NCBI GenBank assembly: GCA_964247055.1
Contig: OZ176052.1
Coordinates: 10,044,001 to 10,108,000 of the forward strand
Length of the DNA stretch: 64,000 nucleotides
Source of the DNA: Paragordius varius
Taxonomy: Eukaryota; Animalia; Nematomorpha
Direction: 5' to 3'
Within the stretch, counting starts at the first letter, position 1, and each line of letters opens with the position of its first letter. Positions 3,001 to 64,000 of the stretch are shown one piece after another. The notes under the pieces were generated by a model. The model searched no databases. It was not told the origin of the DNA and saw nothing but the letters and a program-made list of their open reading frames with translations. Made by a program: the position numbers and the translations under genes.

Positions 3001-6000
3001 AAAAATATAATCATTAATGAATGCCCCGACAATAGCTTCGCCCTTTTTTGGAATTAGGTCCCCAGTTTGGGCCCACCCCGTGTGAAAAATGGGTTAAGTC
3101 AATTTTTTGGAGAACGTGTTGGACCATTCAATTTCAAATATGATTTTTGTTTACTTATTTTCGATTGCGCCGAACATAGTCGAGTCACTTTTTTGATTTA
3201 GGCCCTCTTTTTACCCGCTCCCCCCGTAAAATGCCATTTTTTTCAAAAAAGTCCACAAAAATATTTTTTTGATTGTATTTTTTTGCCCACGGTATGAGAC
3301 TGTAAAAATTCGAGAAAGATTTTTCGTTTTGCCTGTTAAAAGGCAAAAATTTTAGTCAAGCGTTTCTTTGATGATAGATGCTGAGTAAGGAGTATCTATC
3401 ATATGCATAGCATGTTAAAAGATATATGGATATTAATACATTATTTATCCTCATCTATATATTTATAAAAATGGAAAAGGCTGGCTTTGTGATCTGGTAC
3501 AGGAAAACCGGTAGACCCAATCAAATCCAAATATCGAAAAAATATAATCATTAATAAATGTCCCGACAATAGCTTCGCCCTTTTTTTGAAATAGGCCCCC
3601 AGTTCGGGCCCACCCCGTATGAAAAACGGGTTTTTTTTGAAAACAGAAGTCCACAAAATCGTGTTTTTGAGACAATATTCCGGAGAACGTGTTGGACCAT
3701 TCAATTTCAAATATGAATTTTGTTTACTTATTTTCGATTGCGCCGAACATAGTCGAGCCACTTTTTTGATTTAGGCCCTCTTTTTACCCGCTCCCCCCGT
3801 AAAATGCCATTTTTTTCAAAAAAAAATAAAGTCCACAAAAATATTTTTTTGATTGTATTTTTTTGCCCACGGTATGAGACTGTAAAAATTCGAGAAAGAT
3901 TTTTCGTATTGCCTGTTAAAAGGCAAAAATTTTAGTCAAGCGTTTCTTTGATGATAGATGCTGAGTAAGGAGTATCTATCATATGCATAGCATGTTAAAA
4001 GATATATGGATATTAATACATTATTTATCCTCATCTATATATTTATAAAAATGGAAAAGGCTGGCTTTGTGATCTGGTACAGGAAAACCGGTAGACCCAA
4101 TCAAATCCAAATATCGAAAAAATATAATCATTAATAAATGTCCCGACAATAGCTTCGCCCTTTTTTTGAAATAGGCCCCCAGTTCGGGCCCACCCCGTAT
4201 GAAAAACGGGTTTTTTTTGAAAACATAAGTCCACAAAATCGTGTTTTTGAGACAATATTCCGGAGAACGTGTTGGACCATTCAATTTCAAATATGAATTT
4301 TGTTTACTTATTTTCGATTGCGCCGAACATAGTCGAGCCACTTTTTTGATTTAGGCCCTCTTTTTACCCGCTACCCCCGTAAAATGCAATTTTTTTCAAA
4401 AAAAAATAAAGTCCACAAAAATATTTTTTTGATTGTATTGTTTTGCCCACGGTATGAGACTGTAAAAATTCGAGAAAGATTTTTCGTATTGCCTGTTAAA
4501 AGGCAAAAATTTTAGTCAAGCGTTTCTTTGATGATAGATGCTGAGTAAGGAGTACTTTTTACCCGCTACCCCCGTAAAATGCCATTTTTTTCAAAAAAAA
4601 AACAAAGTCCACAAAAATATTTTTTTGATTGTATTTTTTTGCCCACGGTATGAGACTGTAAAAATTCGAGAAAGATTTTTCGTATTGCCTGTTAAAAGGC
4701 AAAAATTTTAGTCAAGCGTTTCTTTGATGATAGATGCTGAGTAAGGAGTATCTATCATATGCATAGCATGTTAAAAGATATATGGATATCAATACATTAT
4801 TTATCCTCATCTATATATTTATAAAAATGGAAAAGGCTGGCTTTGTGATCTGGTACAGGAAAACCGGTAGACCCAATCAAATCCAAATATCGAAAAAATA
4901 TAATCATTAATAAATGTCCCGACAATAGCTTCGCCCTTTTTTTGAAATAGGCCCCCAGTTCGGGCCCACCCCGTATGAAAAACGGGTTTTTTTTGAAAAC
5001 ATAAGTCCACAAAATCGTGTTTTTGAGACAATATTCCGGAGAACGTGTTGGACCATTCAATTTCAAATATGAATTTTGTTTACTTATTTTCGATTGCGCC
5101 GAACATAGTCGAGCCACTTTTTTGATTTAGGCCCTCTTTTTACCCGCTACCCCCGTAAAATGCAATTTTTTTCAAAAAAAAATAAAGTCCACAAAAATAT
5201 TTTTTTGATTGTATTTTTTTGCCCACGGTATGAGACTGTAAAAATTCGAGAAAGATTTTTCGTATTGCCTGTTAAAAGGCAAAAATTTTAGTCCACCGTT
5301 TATTTGATGATAGCTGCTGGGTAAGGAGCTACCCGCTAAAAACTGATTTTTCATATAATTTTGTGAACTGTTTCCGGAAAACCGGTGATTCCAATCTCCA
5401 AATATCGAAAAAATATAATCATTAATGAATGCCCCGACAATAGCTTCGCCCTTTTTTGGAATTAGGTCCCCAGTTTGGGCCCACCCCGTGTGAAAAATGG
5501 GTTAAGTCAATTTTTTGGAGAACGTGTTGGACCATTCAATTTCAAATATGATTTTTGTTTACTTATTTTCGATTGCGCCGAACATAGTCGAGTCACTTTT
5601 TTGATTTAGGCCCTCTTTTTACCCGCTCCCCCCGTAAAATGCCATTTTTTTCAAAAAAGTCCACAAAAATATTTTTTTGATTGTATTTTTTTGCCCACGG
5701 TATGAAACTGTAAAAATTCGAGAAAGATTTTTCGTTTTGCCTGTTAAAAGGCAAAAATTTTAGTCAAGCGTTTCTTTGATGATAGATGCTGAGTAAGGAG
5801 TATCTATCATATGCATAGCATGTTAAAAGATATATGGATATTAATACATTATTTATCCTCATCTATATATTTATAAAAATGGAAAAGGCTGGCTTTGTGA
5901 TCTGGTACAGGAAAACCGGTAGACCCAATCAAATCCAAATATCGAAAAAATATAATCATTAATAAATGTCCCGACAATAGCTTCGCCCTTTTTTTGAAAT

Positions 6001-54920: not shown

Positions 54921-57900
54921 ATGGAATTTGACTTTACAGATATTGCAGATAATCAATTAAAAGAAGTAAATTTTTATTTATTTTTTAGTTCACATATAAC
55001 CAAGAAAAAATTTTGGTTTATCGTAAAAATGGAAGGTTTTACGCTACATCTTCTAAATGCACGCATTATGGGGCGCCTCTCATAAATGGTGTTCATAATG
55101 GGGATACTGTAAGATGTCCATGGCACGGCGCTTGTTTTAATCTCAAAACGGGAGACATTGAAGATTTTCCGGGATTGGATAATTTGACCTGTTATAAAGT
55201 TGTAGCAATTAATTATTGTAGGTTGAAAAAGTGCGAGACAACATATATAGCATAAGCAAACCCGACAATTTAATAAACAATTTTGTTCCTAAGACAAAAA
55301 ACCATTTTTATATTTTGGGTGGTGGACCGTCTGGTTTAGAATGTGCAGAAACTTTACGAAAGCAGGTAAAAATCGGTTGATTTAATTTTACCTTTTTTTA
55401 ATATATAATAACAAATTTGGCATTCTTATTCGTTAAAGTTATAAATTGCCCACTTTTCATAATTAGTAAAAATCTTAATTAAATTTGCCTATAAAATAAT
55501 TTTTAGTGGTAAATTCATAAGTAGATCATAACTACTACGAGTAATTTACCATATAATTAACCTTTTAGAAAGTTAAAAATTGCAAATATCGCTCACATTA
55601 GATTTATATTTTTGAACTGAAATTATAAAACAAATATCGTCTGTAGTTTAAAAATATATTTTTTTGAGTCCCTATTTTATATACAGAAAAATGCGCTTTA
55701 ATGCTGAATTTTAGATATTTTTGTTCTTTTGACACAAACGCTTGATTGCGAAAATGTTAGGTAATAAAGGACTTTTACTAAAATTGAATCATAGCTAAAA
55801 TATTTAACCTTCATAGAGATTTTTAAACTTAAGAAACATATTCAAAGCATATTTAATAGTTAATTTATAAGTAATTTCTTATTTTTTATACAATACTTGA
55901 TAATCATATATGAAATTTGAAATTAATATCAGGCCAAAATTCTTTACAACTGCTTTTTAGGAGATCACGATCATTTATTCTCTTAATTTTATTTCATATT
56001 GTACAAATACTACTATTTTATCATTCAAAAATTTGTAGCTTTTAATCTCCGCCCAATATATGGCAAATATTCAATTAGTTTGAATATCACTTTTCCCTCA
56101 AATAAATTTTATATAAACGCCCTTTTATAACCGGTTAAAATGGCGAATATAAAATTGAAACTATGTTTTTCAGATCAAAACAATTTTATTTCTACGAGTA
56201 AATTTTTACAAAAATTAAATTAAAAAATAAGAAATTTAAAATTTATTAAAAAAGTATTATATACCATATATAGAATTTTGATGGAAAAATAACCATATTG
56301 ACGAAAGATTGCAATCTACCTTATGATCGGCCGAAACTCAGTAAAACAATGGACTTGGATATAGCTAAAATTGTATTGCGAAACGAGGAATTTTATGTCA
56401 AACGCGGAATCGATATAAGAACAAATATGGCGGTTAAGAAAGTTGATTTTGACACAAAAACTATTTTTACCACTTCAGATCAACAACATAAAGTAAATCT
56501 CATTTTTTTCAATTATTGAGGTTATATTTTTTGAACGAAGATTTTTTTAACATATATGGCTTTGTTTATATTATTAATATGGTCCTATATTTAATCAATT
56601 TCAATGTAAGTCAGTAAGTTTTAGGATTTTAATAGAAATTTTAAATTTACCAAACAGTTAAAAGTAATGGATAAAAATTATTTTAGGGGAAATATCAGAC
56701 TTTTTAAATTAAGATTGTGGGTCTCTTCTCTAGAAATTGTGCAATCTGTTTTATTAAATATTTTTCTTACGTCCTATGATAAATAATAAAATACATGCAT
56801 GATCTATTAAAAACCCAAAACCTATCATTTTGTAAATCTAACATTTTTTGTTTTATTAATATATTTTCTTTAGTATGACAAACTTTACATTGCATTGGGG
56901 TCGAGTCCTATAATACCGAATGTACCTGGCATTAAACTTGGCAATATATTTTCCCTCCGCTCTTTGGCAGATGCTCAAAATATGTATCGGCATATTAAAG
57001 AGGACAAGGATGTTGTTATTATTGGGAGTTCTTTTATAGGTATGTAGTTGTATAAATTATTATTGTGACATTTTCATAATTTTATTTTATGCATAAATAA
57101 AAAAGAAATTTTGTAAAAAGATTTCATTAATCATAGATTAGGTAACTGAGATCTAGTTGTTTATATAAATATCTTAAAATTTTGACTATATATACCGGGG
57201 AATATAAATCAAATATTTCTTATTATAATATCAATTTTGCATCAGAATCTACGCTTATATCCCAAATTTAACATAAAAAATAATTTATATATGATATAAA
57301 TTTGTTATCTTTTTTTTGGTTAAACAAAAATATTATTATATCAATCCTAAAAAGTTAAACCATACAAATGAAATTTACTTTAACAGGAATGGAAATTGCT
57401 TCAATTATCAAAGGGAAAGCAAAAAGTATTACCGTTGTTACCAATACCAGTGTACCGTTTGAACGGGCGTTTGGGCTAAAGATTGGAACTTTTCTCAAAT
57501 CTCTACATGAATCTAATGGTATTAAATTTCAGACAAATACCTCACTTCAAGCATTTGAAGGCGATAACAGCAATTTGGTTCGACATGTCCTACTTGCTGA
57601 TGGATCAAAGTAATATGATATCATTTGAAAATGTTGATTATATATTTTACTGTAAAAAATATACAGTTTAGAGTCGGTTTTTTTTGAGGGGCATATGCTA
57701 TCAAAGGCATAAACATTTGCAGCTGACAGCTATGATAAAAAATTTTGGCAGTTTTTTTGTTGATTTATAGTATTTATAATTAATTTTACACTTTTTTTCT
57801 AACCTAATTGGTAAACCTACTTTTTCTGTTTTTAATCGATAAATTTATATTCAGAATTCCGTGTGACATTTGTATCCTGGGTCTCGGGGTTAGGCCTGTC

Positions 57901-58112
57901 AGCGCCCAATTGTTTAATGGGACGAAGCTTGCTCTAAATCAATTTGGGTGTATTGAAGTGAACGAGTTTATGGAAACATCCGTACCCAATGTTTATGCTG
58001 GTGGAGATACGGTTTCTTTCCCCCTGTATCTGACGGCTAATGATTTTGAATCTTTTAAATCTACACCATCTGGGAAATGGAATAAGGTATTTAATTTGTT
58101 TTTTAGTAATTT

Positions 58113-58143
<31 letters not shown>

Positions 58144-59254
58144 TATACATATATATATATATTAATCACTTTAATCTTTCGTAATGGATTTATTTATGGA
58201 TATAAAGAGCATTTTTAGTAACTTCATCATTATTGTTAAGAACGAAAAAATATTAAATAACAATTGATGCATAAATACGTGATATTATACCTCACTTATA
58301 GGTAATTTTTTAAAAAAATCGCAAATGTTATAAATTTATATTAAAATAAGCCTATAAATCATTTTGAAAATTACAATAATGCTCTAAATTTCAGTTTGAT
58401 CATTAGTGTTGTAATGTGCGCCTTCTTGAAACTTTATATTAATTATAGGCTAACATTCAACATTGGCAAATGGCTCACAAACATGGTCAGGTAGGGGCAT
58501 ACAATATGTTAGACAAGGTAATAAATTAATTGTTTAAGCCCCCCATCTATATTAAATATATTCATAACCTGTTATTTAATAGTATTATTTAAATGATAAA
58601 TTGACATTATTGCTCCAATTTTTTATTTTATTACGGACTAACCATAATTTATAATTTGTTTTATATTATCTAGCTACATATATAATTTAACTTTTTAAAT
58701 TGCGATATTTCATATATTCATACCGTTTACTAGAAAATACCTATCAAAAGTGTACCCTATTTTTGGACCGCTCAATATGGAAAAGGTTTTCGTTATGTTG
58801 GTTACACAATGGATTCTGATCAAACTATTATACATTCCAACGAAGATCAAACTAAAATGGTTGCTTATTACATGAAGGTAGTATTTTAATTAAATGAGTT
58901 AGTTATACATATTGAACGAAACCTTATTATTTTAATTTAAATTTTATTCACCAAAAAATATATTTTTTAAAGGGAAACATTGTACGAGCCGTACTAACTC
59001 TCAATCGGGATCCAGTAGCTTCAATTTTTGCCGAACTAATGTTTGATAATAAACATTGGTTTATTACTTCGGAATATTTGGCTAGTATTGAGGGTGTTTT
59101 TGAACAAAATGCATATATTCAAGCGCTTAAAGAGTTGATTGAAAACCCAATTACCAATGATTTTAGAAATGATAAAATAAATCCTGGTAGAATGCATTTA
59201 TGTGATAACGATCCTACAATGAAGGTACATCGCGACAATACCACGCATTTATAA
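54921..59254 (+). CDS. AIFM3: AIFM3-like Rieske [2Fe-2S] plus FAD/NADH reductase, copy A, ~577 aa; exons 54921-54965, 54989-55198, 55222-55365, 56274-56492, 56874-57039, 57387-57609, 57855-58086, 58449-58517, 58734-58877, 58973-59254
   Basis: Rieske CTHYGAPL and CPWHGACF, GDIEDFPGLD, GGGPSG, PYDRPKLSK, IIGSSFIGME, TSVPNVYAGGD, HWQMA, VPYFWT. Exons sum to 1734 nt, in frame. An extra 5' exon cannot be excluded. Confidence 0.94.
54966..55221 (+). other. Two 23-nt micro-introns in AIFM3 copy A: 54966-54988 and 55199-55221
   Basis: GTAAATTTTTATTTATTTTTTAG joins QLKE|FTYNQEKILV. GTTGTAGCAATTAATTATTGTAG joins CYK|VEKVRDNIY...GGGPSG. Both fix frameshifts inside conserved sequence. Confidence 0.88.
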
Positions 59255-60050
59255 TTAATTACATTTGCTATTAAAATATTTTTATGACAACATAGACCAT
59301 GCATTGTACCTACAAACACGCACACTTAGCTATTTTATTTATTTTAGTTAATTTATAGCTTATTGTTAGATATAGTTACAATTTTCACCTCGTTATAAAC
59401 ATTTATTTTAGTTTAAATGCAATAAAATAAATGAGTCATAGTTTAACTAATTGTCAATATATTTTATTTTATAAGTGCCTTTATAAAATATAATTTAGAA
59501 ATTTTCTTATAAATTCCGGAGAGGAAACAGGTTAAAATTAAATTCAATTATTAGCATTTATGTGCACTAGAAAATTATTTTACAATTTTGGTTTTTAGCT
59601 TGATATTACAAAACTATGTTGTGGATTTATTTATAGATATGTGTATTGCACAGTTAAGTTAAAATTATACATTATTCGATGCATATAGGATGAATTTGAA
59701 TATAAATGCGGTTTAACTAGTATAGTATCCTTGTAAATAAATATTATTATTGAATAAAATTAAAAAATGGATTTAAAACAGTGCTTATGCAATATATAAA
59801 TATAACATATTATATATAAAAATAGTAAATACATTTTTTCAAAATAGAGATATACATATTTACGTCATATGGTAGTTAAATTATATAAAGTAGAAAAAGT
59901 AAATACTTTGTAATATATTGTGAAATGATTTTCTATTAAATTGCTTGACATTTAAATATGAATAAGGAATAAAAACATAATAACTAATGATGCGTAGAAT
60001 GGATAAAATCACGGTGATAATATTATTTTAATTTAAGAATTCATAAGGAC

Positions 60051-62429
60051 TTACAAATGACAAATGGCCAAATTTTCTAAATTATCCTTAGGTTGTGATG
60101 TATTATTTCTGACCTTTTTAGTATGCAGTAATACATCGGAATACAAATATTCTTTTAACGTTTCAACGTATGTTTCGTCATCTATCATAGGCCCCAGAAA
60201 TGCCAAGTGTTGTCGAGTCATGAACCAGTGTTTATCATTCATCATAAGTTCAGCAATGATGGAAGCTACAGGGTCTCGGTTATGTGTAAGTACCGCCCTT
60301 ATAATATCGTCCTATAAATAATTGAAAGTTTTAATTTTCAGGAAAAAATAAAACCTTATGAAAGATAAAATATGTTTAAATTATCTTCATTTAGAAGTAT
60401 GCTAACTTTCTTATCAATTATTATTTTTGGTACAACAAAGCGCTTGTTTTTTCAAAGGTTTATAATAAAAATTAAAACCTTAATGTAATAAGCCACAATT
60501 TTGTTCTTGGTGGCATTAGAGTGTATTATTATATTCGTAGGTCCAGTAGTGTAACCAACGTATCGAAAATCTTTACCATACTGTGTTGTGTAGAAATAAG
60601 GTACACTTTTGATTGCGATTTTCTAAAAGAGACAAAACAGAGTTTGTATGAAATAATCTTTTATTTGAAGCCAATACAGCTTTCAGTGCAAATAATAATT
60701 TTCAGACACATATTATATGCTTTTGACTTAAATATTTTAATTCACACTCAAAGACTACATTATCTTAAGAAATAGAGAGACTGGCCAAATAACATCCCAT
60801 AAAACATAAAAAATTGAATGAGGAAACCTTTTGTTAGAATAATTTAACCAAATAGATTATTTATATATAAATACTTTATCCAGCATATTCAAGGCTGCGA
60901 TTTGACCATGTTTATGCGCCATTTGAAAATGTTGAACATATACCTATCATGAGCAAAATGTTAAAATTGACAATTGAGTTAACATACATATCTATATATA
61001 TCGTTTCATAATATTTGGATATATGATTTCGCGTGCAAAATCATTAATTTATAAGTCTAAAACAAGTTAATTAATGTAAATTACACCATGAAACCTTATC
61101 CCATGCAAAGTTTTGATAGGATTCAAAGTTTTTTGCCGTTAAAAAGAGTGGGAATGACACAACACCCCCGGCATACACATCAGGTATATTCGTTTCCATA
61201 TATTCATTAACTTCAATTAACCCAAAATCATTTAACTCAAGTTTGTTCTGAGAGGTAAACAATTGATTACAAACGGGGTCATAACCAGTACCCAACACAC
61301 AAATATCGCATTTTATCCTAAATAAAAAGTATTATAATAGTTAATTTTTTTAAATAAACTTAAAACATATTTATATCATATTTTATCGTATAATTGTTTT
61401 ATTATATTTTACCCTAAAAAAGATAATGCCATGTATCGAATTTGGATAACGACGATAATTTAATTAATTGATATTTAGTATATCTATCTCTGCTAACTAA
61501 AATTGAGTAATTTTGAAAAAATTAAAAATAAATTAAATTTTACGTTTTCAAACAAGATATTACCTGATTCCATTGGATAAAATAACGCGAGAAACTTTAT
61601 TTCCATCCCCTTTAAGTTCAATGAGAGTAGCGTTGGTAATAAAATTGATTCCATTTGCTTTATGTAAATCCATAATATAGGTTCCAACTTCACGGCCAAA
61701 CACTTGTTGAAACGGAACGTCAGTTTTCATAACTACTGTTATGCGTTTGGCTTTTCCTGCCAGAACAGAAGCAATCTCCATACCTTTTCCCACAAATATT
61801 CGATAAAATTACCAAATGATAAAATAAGTCAAGATTCGAAATAAAAGTTAACTATGCCATTTGGTTCACGCTTTAGAGAAAGATGATTTTGCAAAAAATA
61901 TTATCAAAAGATGCGACTTTCTGCATATAAAATATATGATTTGAAAATGAGAATTTCAAAACCACTTATAATTTATAAGAACCCGGTTTTGTCAAAATTT
62001 CGAGTAAATCTCTGGTTTTATTTTTTTAATTTTAGGAATCAGCCTGGTTCTGTTCTGGCCTAACCTTGATTTTGGTTCCATTTTTTCGATCTTAACGACT
62101 TAAAAGGATAAACAGTTAACATTCTATGGTATTTCTGAGCAATATCTCTGGGTGACTTTCATTTTATTGATTTTGATATTATTTAAATAATTATGTATAG
62201 GTATTTATAACGATGCATCATTTTTCTTTATGATAAGGTTAGTCATTTTTATTTCAGTAGATTTACATTTTTTCATATAAGTTTTTCGTTAATCAATAAA
62301 ATCGGTTTTGATGACCTAATTGTATCGTCATATTATTAATTAAAATATAATTTACATTAGAAAACAAGACAAAAGTCTCAATGATATAAGGGTAAAAAGG
62401 ATAAAATTCCAAACAGTTTTTACATGGGA

Positions 62430-62465
<36 letters not shown>

Positions 62466-64000
62466 TCACTTTAGTTATCATTACCCACAAATGAGTTTCC
62501 AATAACTACTACATGCTTCTCAGGCCCTATTTCCTTATATAATTTCTGTGCATCTTGTAATGTTAGTACGGTAAATACGTTGCCAAGATCGGTTCCTGGC
62601 ACTTCGGGCACATTGGAGGAGGATCCAAGCGCAATCAACAATTTATCATACTAATGATAAAAGGACATTTTTCCAAATTTAATATTTGATACTCCTAATT
62701 TTTAGTGCAGGGTGCCGCCCTCCAATATTGGAAGTCCAGGATTTCCAAAAATATCCTCACAAAATCTTAGTATTGATAATCCTTAAACAAATTTTCTGAA
62801 TAAGTCTGTACAATTAACAACAAACTAGAAAAATTGCTATATTATATTACATTTGCATTTTACAGTTTTATGTTTGAAATCCAATAAAATATTTATTATA
62901 TCCATATTTATTTAAAAATGCGGCCTGTGAAGCCATTTGTGTTGAACGCCGCAATTTTAGTGTGTATAATTTGACATACCGCTAAAAGTTTTTTGGCATG
63001 ATTTTATATTTATATTCATCAATAAAATTATTATGTTTATAAAAATGCAATAACTTTTAGAATATAAAGATAAAAATTAAAAGTGTGATAACATTATACG
63101 GCTAGAATAAAATTCTAAAATATTATATTTCATTTGATTTAATAATATTAGTTTATTAATTATTGCGCAAATTTAACTTTCGCCTTCTTAAAGGATATGA
63201 ATGCGTATATTGATTTGTTCCTAATACATTTAATAACACTTTTTACTCAATAAGTTGCTAAAACAAAAAGCCTTACTTCGTTCGAGGACGTTGAATTTTT
63301 ATTATATTTAAATACTCCATTCACAAGCAATTAAAAATTAAACCTTATATGTGTGTCCAGATTGAATTTGGATAGCTTTTGACTCAAAATCAATATTTGT
63401 CACCACGGTACCTCTCCTTAAATTAATATTGTAATGGGTATAAAATTTTTCACATCTAAATGCAATTTTCCCAAAATTTGAGACATCCATAGTTTTCGTA
63501 ATTTGGGGCCGATCATATGGTAAGTTAATATCTTTTGCGATGATAGTTATGGGACCTATATGACCCTGTAATTAATGATCAAAAATATTAATGACAAATT
63601 CGTATTTTTCTAAAAAAATTTAAAAATAAAAATGTGTAAGGCTTATATTCAGTGGCAAAGTAGATAAAATAGTGTATTAATATATCTCAGCTAGTTAAAT
63701 TATAAATCTTACATTTTTTCTTAATGTTTCTGCACAAATCAACCCACAGGGTCCACTTCCAATAATATATATGTGAAATGCACTATCTTTAATATAATAA
63801 TTAATAAACGATTGTGGTTTTATAACGTATAAAGTTTCACTTATTCGTTTAACCTATATTAAAAAAACTTATACCTTAAAAGATAATAAATCATCCAATC
63901 CTGGATACTCTAAAATAGTTCCCGTTTTTAGATTATAACACGCACCATCATAAGGGCATCGAATAGTGTGACCATTTTGTACGCCTTTGATAAGGGGGCA
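60051..64000 (-). CDS. AIFM3: AIFM3-like paralog, copy B (5' end beyond window); exons >64000-63875, 63853-63713, 63565-63344, 62650-62485, 61783-61564, 61317-61095, 60943-60875, 60622-60479, 60311-60051
   Basis: All nine visible exons are open, with introns at the same positions and phases as copy A (IIGSGPCG, PYDRPQITK, IGNSFVGME, QHFQMA, VPYFYT, NRDPVAS). Key cofactor residues are altered (see findings). Confidence 0.92.
62858..62952 (+). mobile_element. hAT-like MITE fragment in an AIFM3-B intron
   Basis: TTTACAGTTTTATGTTTGAAATCCA...ATGCGGCCTGTGAAGCCATTT is colinear with 14577-14660. Confidence 0.55.
63854..63874 (-). other. 21-nt micro-intron in AIFM3 copy B
   Basis: GTATAAGTTTTTTTAATATAG at the same codon boundary (K|V) as the 23-nt intron 55199-55221 of copy A; retention gives an in-frame TAA. 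Confidence 0.9.

Follow-up and report, generated by a model that had tools for sequence, protein, structure and literature searches.

An intact AIFM3-type gene of the nematomorph Paragordius varius lacks both Rieske histidine ligands and the flavin-binding aspartate

The biochemistry of AIFM3, a protein conserved in animals, has hardly been studied. Rieske clusters need both of their histidine ligands for the outer iron, the aspartate of the GD motif binds the ribitol of flavin adenine dinucleotide (FAD) in the glutathione reductase superfamily, and AIF-family proteins dimerise. A Rieske fold without the ligand set for a [2Fe-2S] cluster is represented by NirD and other members of the Pfam family Rieske_2, which are small bacterial nitrite reductase subunits. 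For the related NAD(P)H/FAD oxidoreductase FSP1 (AIFM2), the GD-motif mutant D285N has been described to fold but to lack FAD and activity (PMC10643123, PMC12999485). Here we describe gene B, an AIFM3-type gene on the minus strand of a 64,000-nucleotide stretch of the Paragordius varius genome (the window; assembly GCA_964247055.1, contig OZ176052.1, positions 10,044,001 to 10,108,000), in which it extends from position 60051 to just beyond 64000. Gene B is an intact gene of 10 exons that has lost both Rieske His residues, conserved residues of the cluster loops and the GD Asp, and the flavin and C-terminal part of its product is as constrained as that of two canonical neighbouring copies, A and C. 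As judged from sequence comparison, it is best read as a selected AIFM3-type paralogue without a cluster, one of three tandem, lineage-specific copies.

Spliced models of A, B and C were compared with protein libraries exon by exon. The best full-length match of all three, summed over exons, was the “apoptosis-inducing factor 3-like” protein of the hairworm Gordionus sp. m RMFG-2023 (XP_065320564/5, P0151/P0049; 49–53% identity), which resembles B in the order of its domains (Rieske, Pyr_redox_2, Reductase_C) and, by tblastn, in the order of its exons. Both Rieske His residues and the GD Asp are missing from B in comparison with this protein, and the Gordionus gene is single-copy within ±10 kb whereas three copies are present here. 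Among solved structures, the best matches of the Rieske exon of B were Rieske ferredoxins of ring-hydroxylating dioxygenase systems (PDB 2i7f and CarAc 1vck; E = 1.7e-5 and 7e-5, respectively). These ferredoxins bind their cluster by CxH...CxxH, whereas the corresponding positions of B read CxY...CxxD, and the AIFM3-type architecture looks like such a bacterial ferredoxin fused to its own ferredoxin reductase. Unlike NirD and other Rieske_2 members, B is a eukaryotic fusion protein in which both Cys ligands are kept, and its match to Rieske_2 (17.7 bits) lies below the cut-off of 27. It shares with FSP1 D285N the loss of the GD-motif Asp, but FSP1 has no Rieske domain and D285N arose in the laboratory or somatically, whereas B is a paralogue found in nature from which a codon has been deleted. 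A literature search on cluster-less Rieske proteins returned nothing useful, and the four papers that mention both AIFM3 and Rieske concern, as judged from their titles and abstracts, clinical or expression subjects.

Loss and retention of cofactor residues in gene B

Gene B encodes an open frame of 566 amino acids, and local translation together with a splice check revealed GT-AG boundaries for all nine introns and no internal stop codons. The minus strand of 60001–64000 translates into nine open segments that match copy A exon by exon with 45–77% identity; exon 1 and the remainder of exon 2 were supplied by flanking DNA of the same contig past the window end (10107001–10117000, referred to as L003). 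An earlier note on this DNA, made from the window alone, had described the nine exons in the window as open with canonical splice sites and had listed seven differences between A and B, and both observations were confirmed, with each of the differences lying no more than a few bases from the place given for it. CPWHG of A is thus CPYDG in B (residues 58–62, window 63958–63944), with the Asp codon GAT at 63949–63947, and YAGGDTV is YAGGVV (residues 383–388, window 61175–61158) through the loss of one codon. The other five are HWQ to HFQ (60931–60923), PYFWT to PYFYT (60601–60587), RPKLSK to RPQITK (63511–63494), LRSL to VLTL (62569–62558) and GVRP to GYDP (61286–61275).

The first Rieske box lies outside the window, as the note had also stated. 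In the upstream exon it reads CTYYDC in B, compared with CTHYGA in A and C, so that both His ligands are gone. Tyr41 (codon TAT at window-equivalent 64009–64007) replaces the first His, and a new Cys44 (codon 64000–63998) is located three residues past it. The ligand set of B is therefore CTY...CPYD, in which both His residues are replaced (Y41 and D61) and both Cys residues are kept, and which does not conform to CxH...CxxH. The codons TAT and GAT each differ by one base from the His codon CAT. In phmmer alignments with solved structures, CTY and CPYD of B were placed under CTH and CPFH of the Rieske ferredoxins 2i7f and 1vck, and YAGGV was placed under YAAGD of glutathione reductase-family flavoproteins. 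Among 34 full-length family representatives, the first His was conserved in 97% and the second in 100%, and the GD position was occupied by D in 30; both A and C have YAGGD, whereas B lacks the Asp.

An alignment of A, B and C with these 34 representatives contained 69 columns that were at least 80% conserved. All 69 are kept in A, 68 in Gordionus, 66 in C and 55 in B. Eight of the 14 losses in B fall in the Rieske part (A34V, H41Y, A44C, W60Y, H61D, F65Y, D71T and E73L), and all of these except A34V map either to one of the two ligand loops or to the loop TGDIEDFPG. The losses in the flavin part are the deleted GD Asp and five conservative changes (G118S, L154I, S155T, I261V and W443Y). The enrichment of losses in the Rieske part (8 of 25 columns, versus 6 of 44 elsewhere) was not significant by itself (Fisher test, p = 0.12).

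Of the 150 nearest representatives, 10 are without a canonical CxH...CxxH, and most of these 10 look like gene-model artefacts; none of the 150 lacks both His residues as B does. Similarly, B alone lacks both His residues and the GD Asp in comparison with the 34 aligned full-length relatives. Individual losses were nevertheless apparent in other animals. The AIFM3-like proteins of Panagrolaimus davidi (A0A914QBU5, P0146) and Panagrolaimus sp. PS1159 (P0061) have Tyr in place of the first His (CTYC) with an intact second box, and the AIFM3-like protein of Styela clava (XP_077966795, P0149) has GA for GD, with both His residues kept and a second box that reads CSRHG. The Panagrolaimus and Styela proteins have thus each lost one of the three features, whereas B has lost all three. 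A 92–amino acid fragment (P0147) reads CPWRG. These comparisons suggest that cofactor motifs have eroded recurrently and independently in AIFM3-like proteins of other animals. The Panagrolaimus proteins are located on a long branch.

The characteristics of an AIFM3-like protein are otherwise evident in B, including a Rieske domain, a Pyr_redox_2 module followed by Reductase_C, its position in the tree and its exon structure. Exon 2 of B scores 41.2 bits against Pfam Rieske PF00355, compared with 69.4 for A and 67.8 for C, and still exceeds the cut-off of 20.3. Exons 5, 6 and 7 each score 35–39 bits for Pyr_redox_2 (PF07992; cut-off, 26.1), and Reductase_C is matched with 16.7 bits by exon 9 alone, below the cut-off, with the region aligning with those of A, C and Gordionus. 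Both dinucleotide motifs are present, that for FAD as GSGPCG and that for NAD(P)H as GNSFVG (GsSFIG in the family), as are CAETLR, LPYDRP and the Lys of the LSK box.

Selective constraint on gene B

Pairwise Nei-Gojobori comparisons of A, B and C yielded proportions of synonymous differences (pS) of 0.70–0.74, which are saturated, and proportions of nonsynonymous differences (pN) of 0.30–0.35, indicating that the copies are old and that replacement changes have been held back. Given that saturation of pS renders a codon-based ratio of nonsynonymous to synonymous rates meaningless, we relied instead on pN relative to pS, relative-rate tests and simulation.

Tajima relative-rate tests were performed with Gordionus as the outgroup and are independent of the branching order of A, B and C. 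In the Rieske domain, B carried 20 unique changes and A carried 7 (p = 0.012), and the comparison with C gave 18 for B and 8 for C (p = 0.05). The corresponding counts for the flavin and C-terminal part were 44 versus 39 (p = 0.58) and 47 versus 49 (p = 0.84). No difference between A and C was detected in either region. Constraint is therefore relaxed specifically in the Rieske domain of B and is normal elsewhere, unlike the situation in a dead gene.

We also simulated decay by neutral substitution on an A-like coding sequence in 20,000 runs, with uniform rates, no insertions or deletions, and splice sites ignored, simplifications that all three work in favour of decay. A median of 17 substitutions preceded the first stop codon, and runs in which at least 14 of the 69 conserved columns had changed by then made up only 0.25% (P = 0.0025). 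Neutral evolution of B, which the earlier note had named as an outcome that would count against its view, is made unlikely by a pN far below saturated pS, by the simulation and by the lack of acceleration in the flavin part. Together these comparisons support the notion that B is under purifying selection rather than decaying.

A HMMER search with the Rieske exon of B against 1.84 billion cluster representatives returned 800 matches, with a best identity of 54%, among which neither an orthologue of B nor any protein of P. varius itself was present. A word-based protein search with the same exon gave no candidate, and a scan of metagenome contigs gave 70 pattern matches and no relatives. In maximum likelihood trees, A, B and C formed a clade (support, 100/99) with Gordionus as its sister (100/99), indicating that the triplication is lineage-specific and old; the single copy at the Gordionus locus likewise indicates that it is lineage-specific. 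Terminal branch lengths were 0.27 for A, 0.68 for B and 0.59 for C. Support for A+B was 97 in a quick tree and 90/69 in a careful tree; with the order so uncertain, we do not uphold a rate for B that is twice that of its sister.

Possible functions of gene B

Because its His ligands and flavin-binding Asp are lost, B probably no longer passes electrons as its sister copies do. Its Rieske domain would survive as a folded module without a cluster, in which case the NAD(P)H-to-FAD-to-[2Fe-2S] relay expected of the architecture would be broken, and FAD binding without the GD Asp is probably weak or absent. Given that the flavin module evolves at the same rate as those of A and C, some nucleotide- or structure-dependent function is presumably still selected. 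The likeliest explanation, to which we would give an even chance, is that B works noncatalytically, through binding, because this module is still constrained: it may be a partner or regulator of A, C or both, in a nucleotide-binding or structural capacity, or else a nucleotide-dependent switch. A partner or regulator role is plausible because AIF-family proteins dimerise. The earlier note had called B a pseudo-enzyme. Loss of essential cofactor or catalytic residues in a homologue of an enzyme family, by which pseudoenzymes are recognised, is indeed found here, in an intact gene whose Rieske ligands are destroyed and whose GD Asp is missing, but the flavin module is kept and constrained; the label is plausible for the iron-sulphur half and unproven for the flavin half.

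Several observations weigh against a noncatalytic, selected B. Gene B is known here from genomic sequence alone, none of the sequencing runs listed being recorded as RNA. An orthologue in another species was not found in the libraries searched, so that constraint in the B lineage is not measurable by codon models. As the branching order of A, B and C, neither A+C (p = 0.13) nor B+C (p = 0.42) is rejected by approximately unbiased (AU) tests. The electron relay itself is predicted from domain architecture, canonical AIFM3 being poorly characterised biochemically. The retained dinucleotide motifs, LPYDRP and Lys, together with normal constraint, fit a working flavoprotein equally well, and the presence in the Rieske loops of both original Cys residues, the new C44 and Asp61 makes an unusual metal site possible.

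The last two points correspond to alternatives that would leave B with redox chemistry. B might be an active, flavin-only NAD(P)H oxidoreductase, similar to AIF or FSP1, that has dropped its Rieske centre and binds FAD despite the missing GD Asp. This reading, which we consider less likely and on balance improbable, is consistent with the flavin and C-terminal part having evolved at equal rates in the three copies, with the retention of GSGPCG, GNSFVG, CAETLR, LPYDRP and the Lys of (L/I)(S/T)K, with the conservative nature of the remaining changes in the flavin domain (G/S, L/I, S/T, I/V and W/Y) and with the GA for GD of the Styela protein. The GD Asp is, however, among the most conserved features of the flavoprotein superfamily, its substitution in FSP1 D285N abolishes FAD binding and activity, and the one-codon deletion in B goes beyond a substitution. 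We regard as very unlikely a rebuilding of the Rieske loops into a His-free metal site, which might be a [2Fe-2S] cluster on Cys39, Cys58, Cys44 and Asp61 or might be mononuclear and rich in Cys; the candidate ligands are Cys39, Cys44 and Cys58 together with Asp61 or Cys64. Both Cys ligands are kept, Asp replaces the second His and a new Cys has arisen three residues after the lost first His, and the Panagrolaimus proteins show the same change of the first His to Tyr with a new adjoining Cys. The spacing in CTYYDC also matches that in the CTHLGC box of Rieske proteins of the bc1 type, a similarity that we count in favour of such a site. Six further family-conserved residues near the cluster (A34V, A44C, W60Y, F65Y, D71T and E73L; 85–97% conserved) have nevertheless changed, and the Rieske domain of B has evolved approximately 2.5 times faster than those of A and C, which resembles relaxation rather than re-tuning. 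The Asp-ligated, re-tuned cluster that the earlier note had offered as its second option is disfavoured by these six changes, even though both Cys residues and Asp61 are in place. If such a site did exist, it would represent a natural conversion of a Rieske centre to a lower-potential or mononuclear site in an AIF-family flavoprotein, in parallel with the independent change in Panagrolaimus.

Two other explanations deny B a function or question its sequence. An unexpressed duplicate in early decay, with its frame open by chance, would account for a gene known from the genome only, for the longest terminal branch of the three, for the loss of cofactor residues in two domains and for the availability of two intact copies that make B dispensable. 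It is quite unlikely, given that a 566-codon frame and nine pairs of splice sites are intact in a genome with a GC content of 27%, that the pattern of B rarely preceded a first stop codon in the simulation, and that neither acceleration outside the Rieske domain nor a pN approaching pS is apparent. That the substitutions are errors of sequencing or assembly can be all but dismissed, even though each His change is only a single base from a His codon: A and B have different residues at approximately 45% of positions, many of the changes are coordinated, 14 of 69 family-conserved columns are altered in B, and two sequencing runs (X1 and X2) contain 93% and 82%, respectively, of the sampled 31-mers of the region.

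Taken alone, a noncatalytic B would add one further pseudoenzyme candidate from a non-model animal. One genome here contains two canonical copies together with a third that lacks the iron-sulphur ligands and the flavin anchor and whose flavin module is still constrained, and the trio offers a natural dissection of the redox parts of AIFM3 from those for binding, sensing or dimerisation.

Organisation of the three-copy locus

A and C retain every cofactor motif. Each of the three genes contains 10 exons and nine GT-AG introns, with identical positions and phases and without internal stop codons. A and B are arranged tail to tail, with their stop codons separated by 796 bp, and B and C are arranged head to head, with their ATG codons 2,000 bp apart, so that the latter pair possibly shares a bidirectional promoter. 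Six-frame searches of the whole genome (110.6 Mb, about 27% GC) with the Rieske exon and the GD exon of A detected these three copies only.

Table 1. Coordinates of the three AIFM3-type genes and their parts. Positions refer to the window or, past its end, to window-equivalent positions with those in the flanking DNA (L003) in parentheses.
Feature	Position	Strand	Remarks
Paralogue A	54921..59254	+	10 exons, 577 amino acids; retains CTH, CPWHG, GGD, HWQ and YFWT
Paralogue C	window-equivalent 66152-71392 (L003:3152-8392), beyond window	+	10 exons, 566 amino acids
B exon 1	window-equivalent 64151-64107 (L003:1151-1107), outside window	-	ATG at 64151
B exon 2	window-equivalent 64084-63875 (L003:1084-875); in-window part 63875..64000	-	Rieske cluster loops; in-window part encodes Cys44 (new), CPYDG (His to Asp61), GACY and TGTILEYPG
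B exon 3	63713..63853	-	End of Rieske domain and FAD GxGxxG motif (IIGSGPCGLICAETLRK)
B exon 4	63344..63565	-	LPYDRPQITK, family consensus lPYDRpkLSK; Lys kept
B exon 5	62485..62650	-	Pyr_redox_2 segment; VLTL replaces LRSL; NAD(P)H motif VVVIGNSFVG begins
B exon 6	61564..61783	-	NAD(P)H-binding domain (Pyr_redox PF00070, 48 bits)
B exon 7	61095..61317	-	GYDP; GD motif shortened to YAGGVV, Asp codon missing between 61164 and 61163
B exon 8	60875..60943	-	HFQMAHKHGQ (Trp to Phe)
B exon 9	60479..60622	-	SVPYFYT (Trp to Tyr); Reductase_C begins
B exon 10	60051..60311	-	Stop codon 60053-60051
Micro-introns of A	54966-54988, 55199-55221	+	GT-AG
Micro-introns of B	63854-63874 (21 nt), window-equivalent 64085-64106	-	GT-AG
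Micro-introns of C	L003:3200-3224, 3441-3467	+	GT-AG

Introns 1 and 2 of all three genes are only 21–27 nt in length, compared with 87–2270 nt for the other introns. The gaps between exons 2 and 3 and between exons 3 and 4 of the Gordionus gene, as estimated from the ends of tblastn matches, are also short (approximately 47 and 44 nt, respectively). Intron 5 of C is 2,270 nt long and contains no open reading frame of at least 70 amino acids. Exon 7 of C is longer than that of A or B, with approximately 16 extra residues in the loop that precedes the GD motif, and its tail past the motif is also longer and diverged relative to those of A and B. A TA-rich repeat (TATA/TATATA type) is located just past exon 7 of A (window about 58110–58170), and a (TA)n microsatellite is present within intron 5 of B (window 62436–62462).

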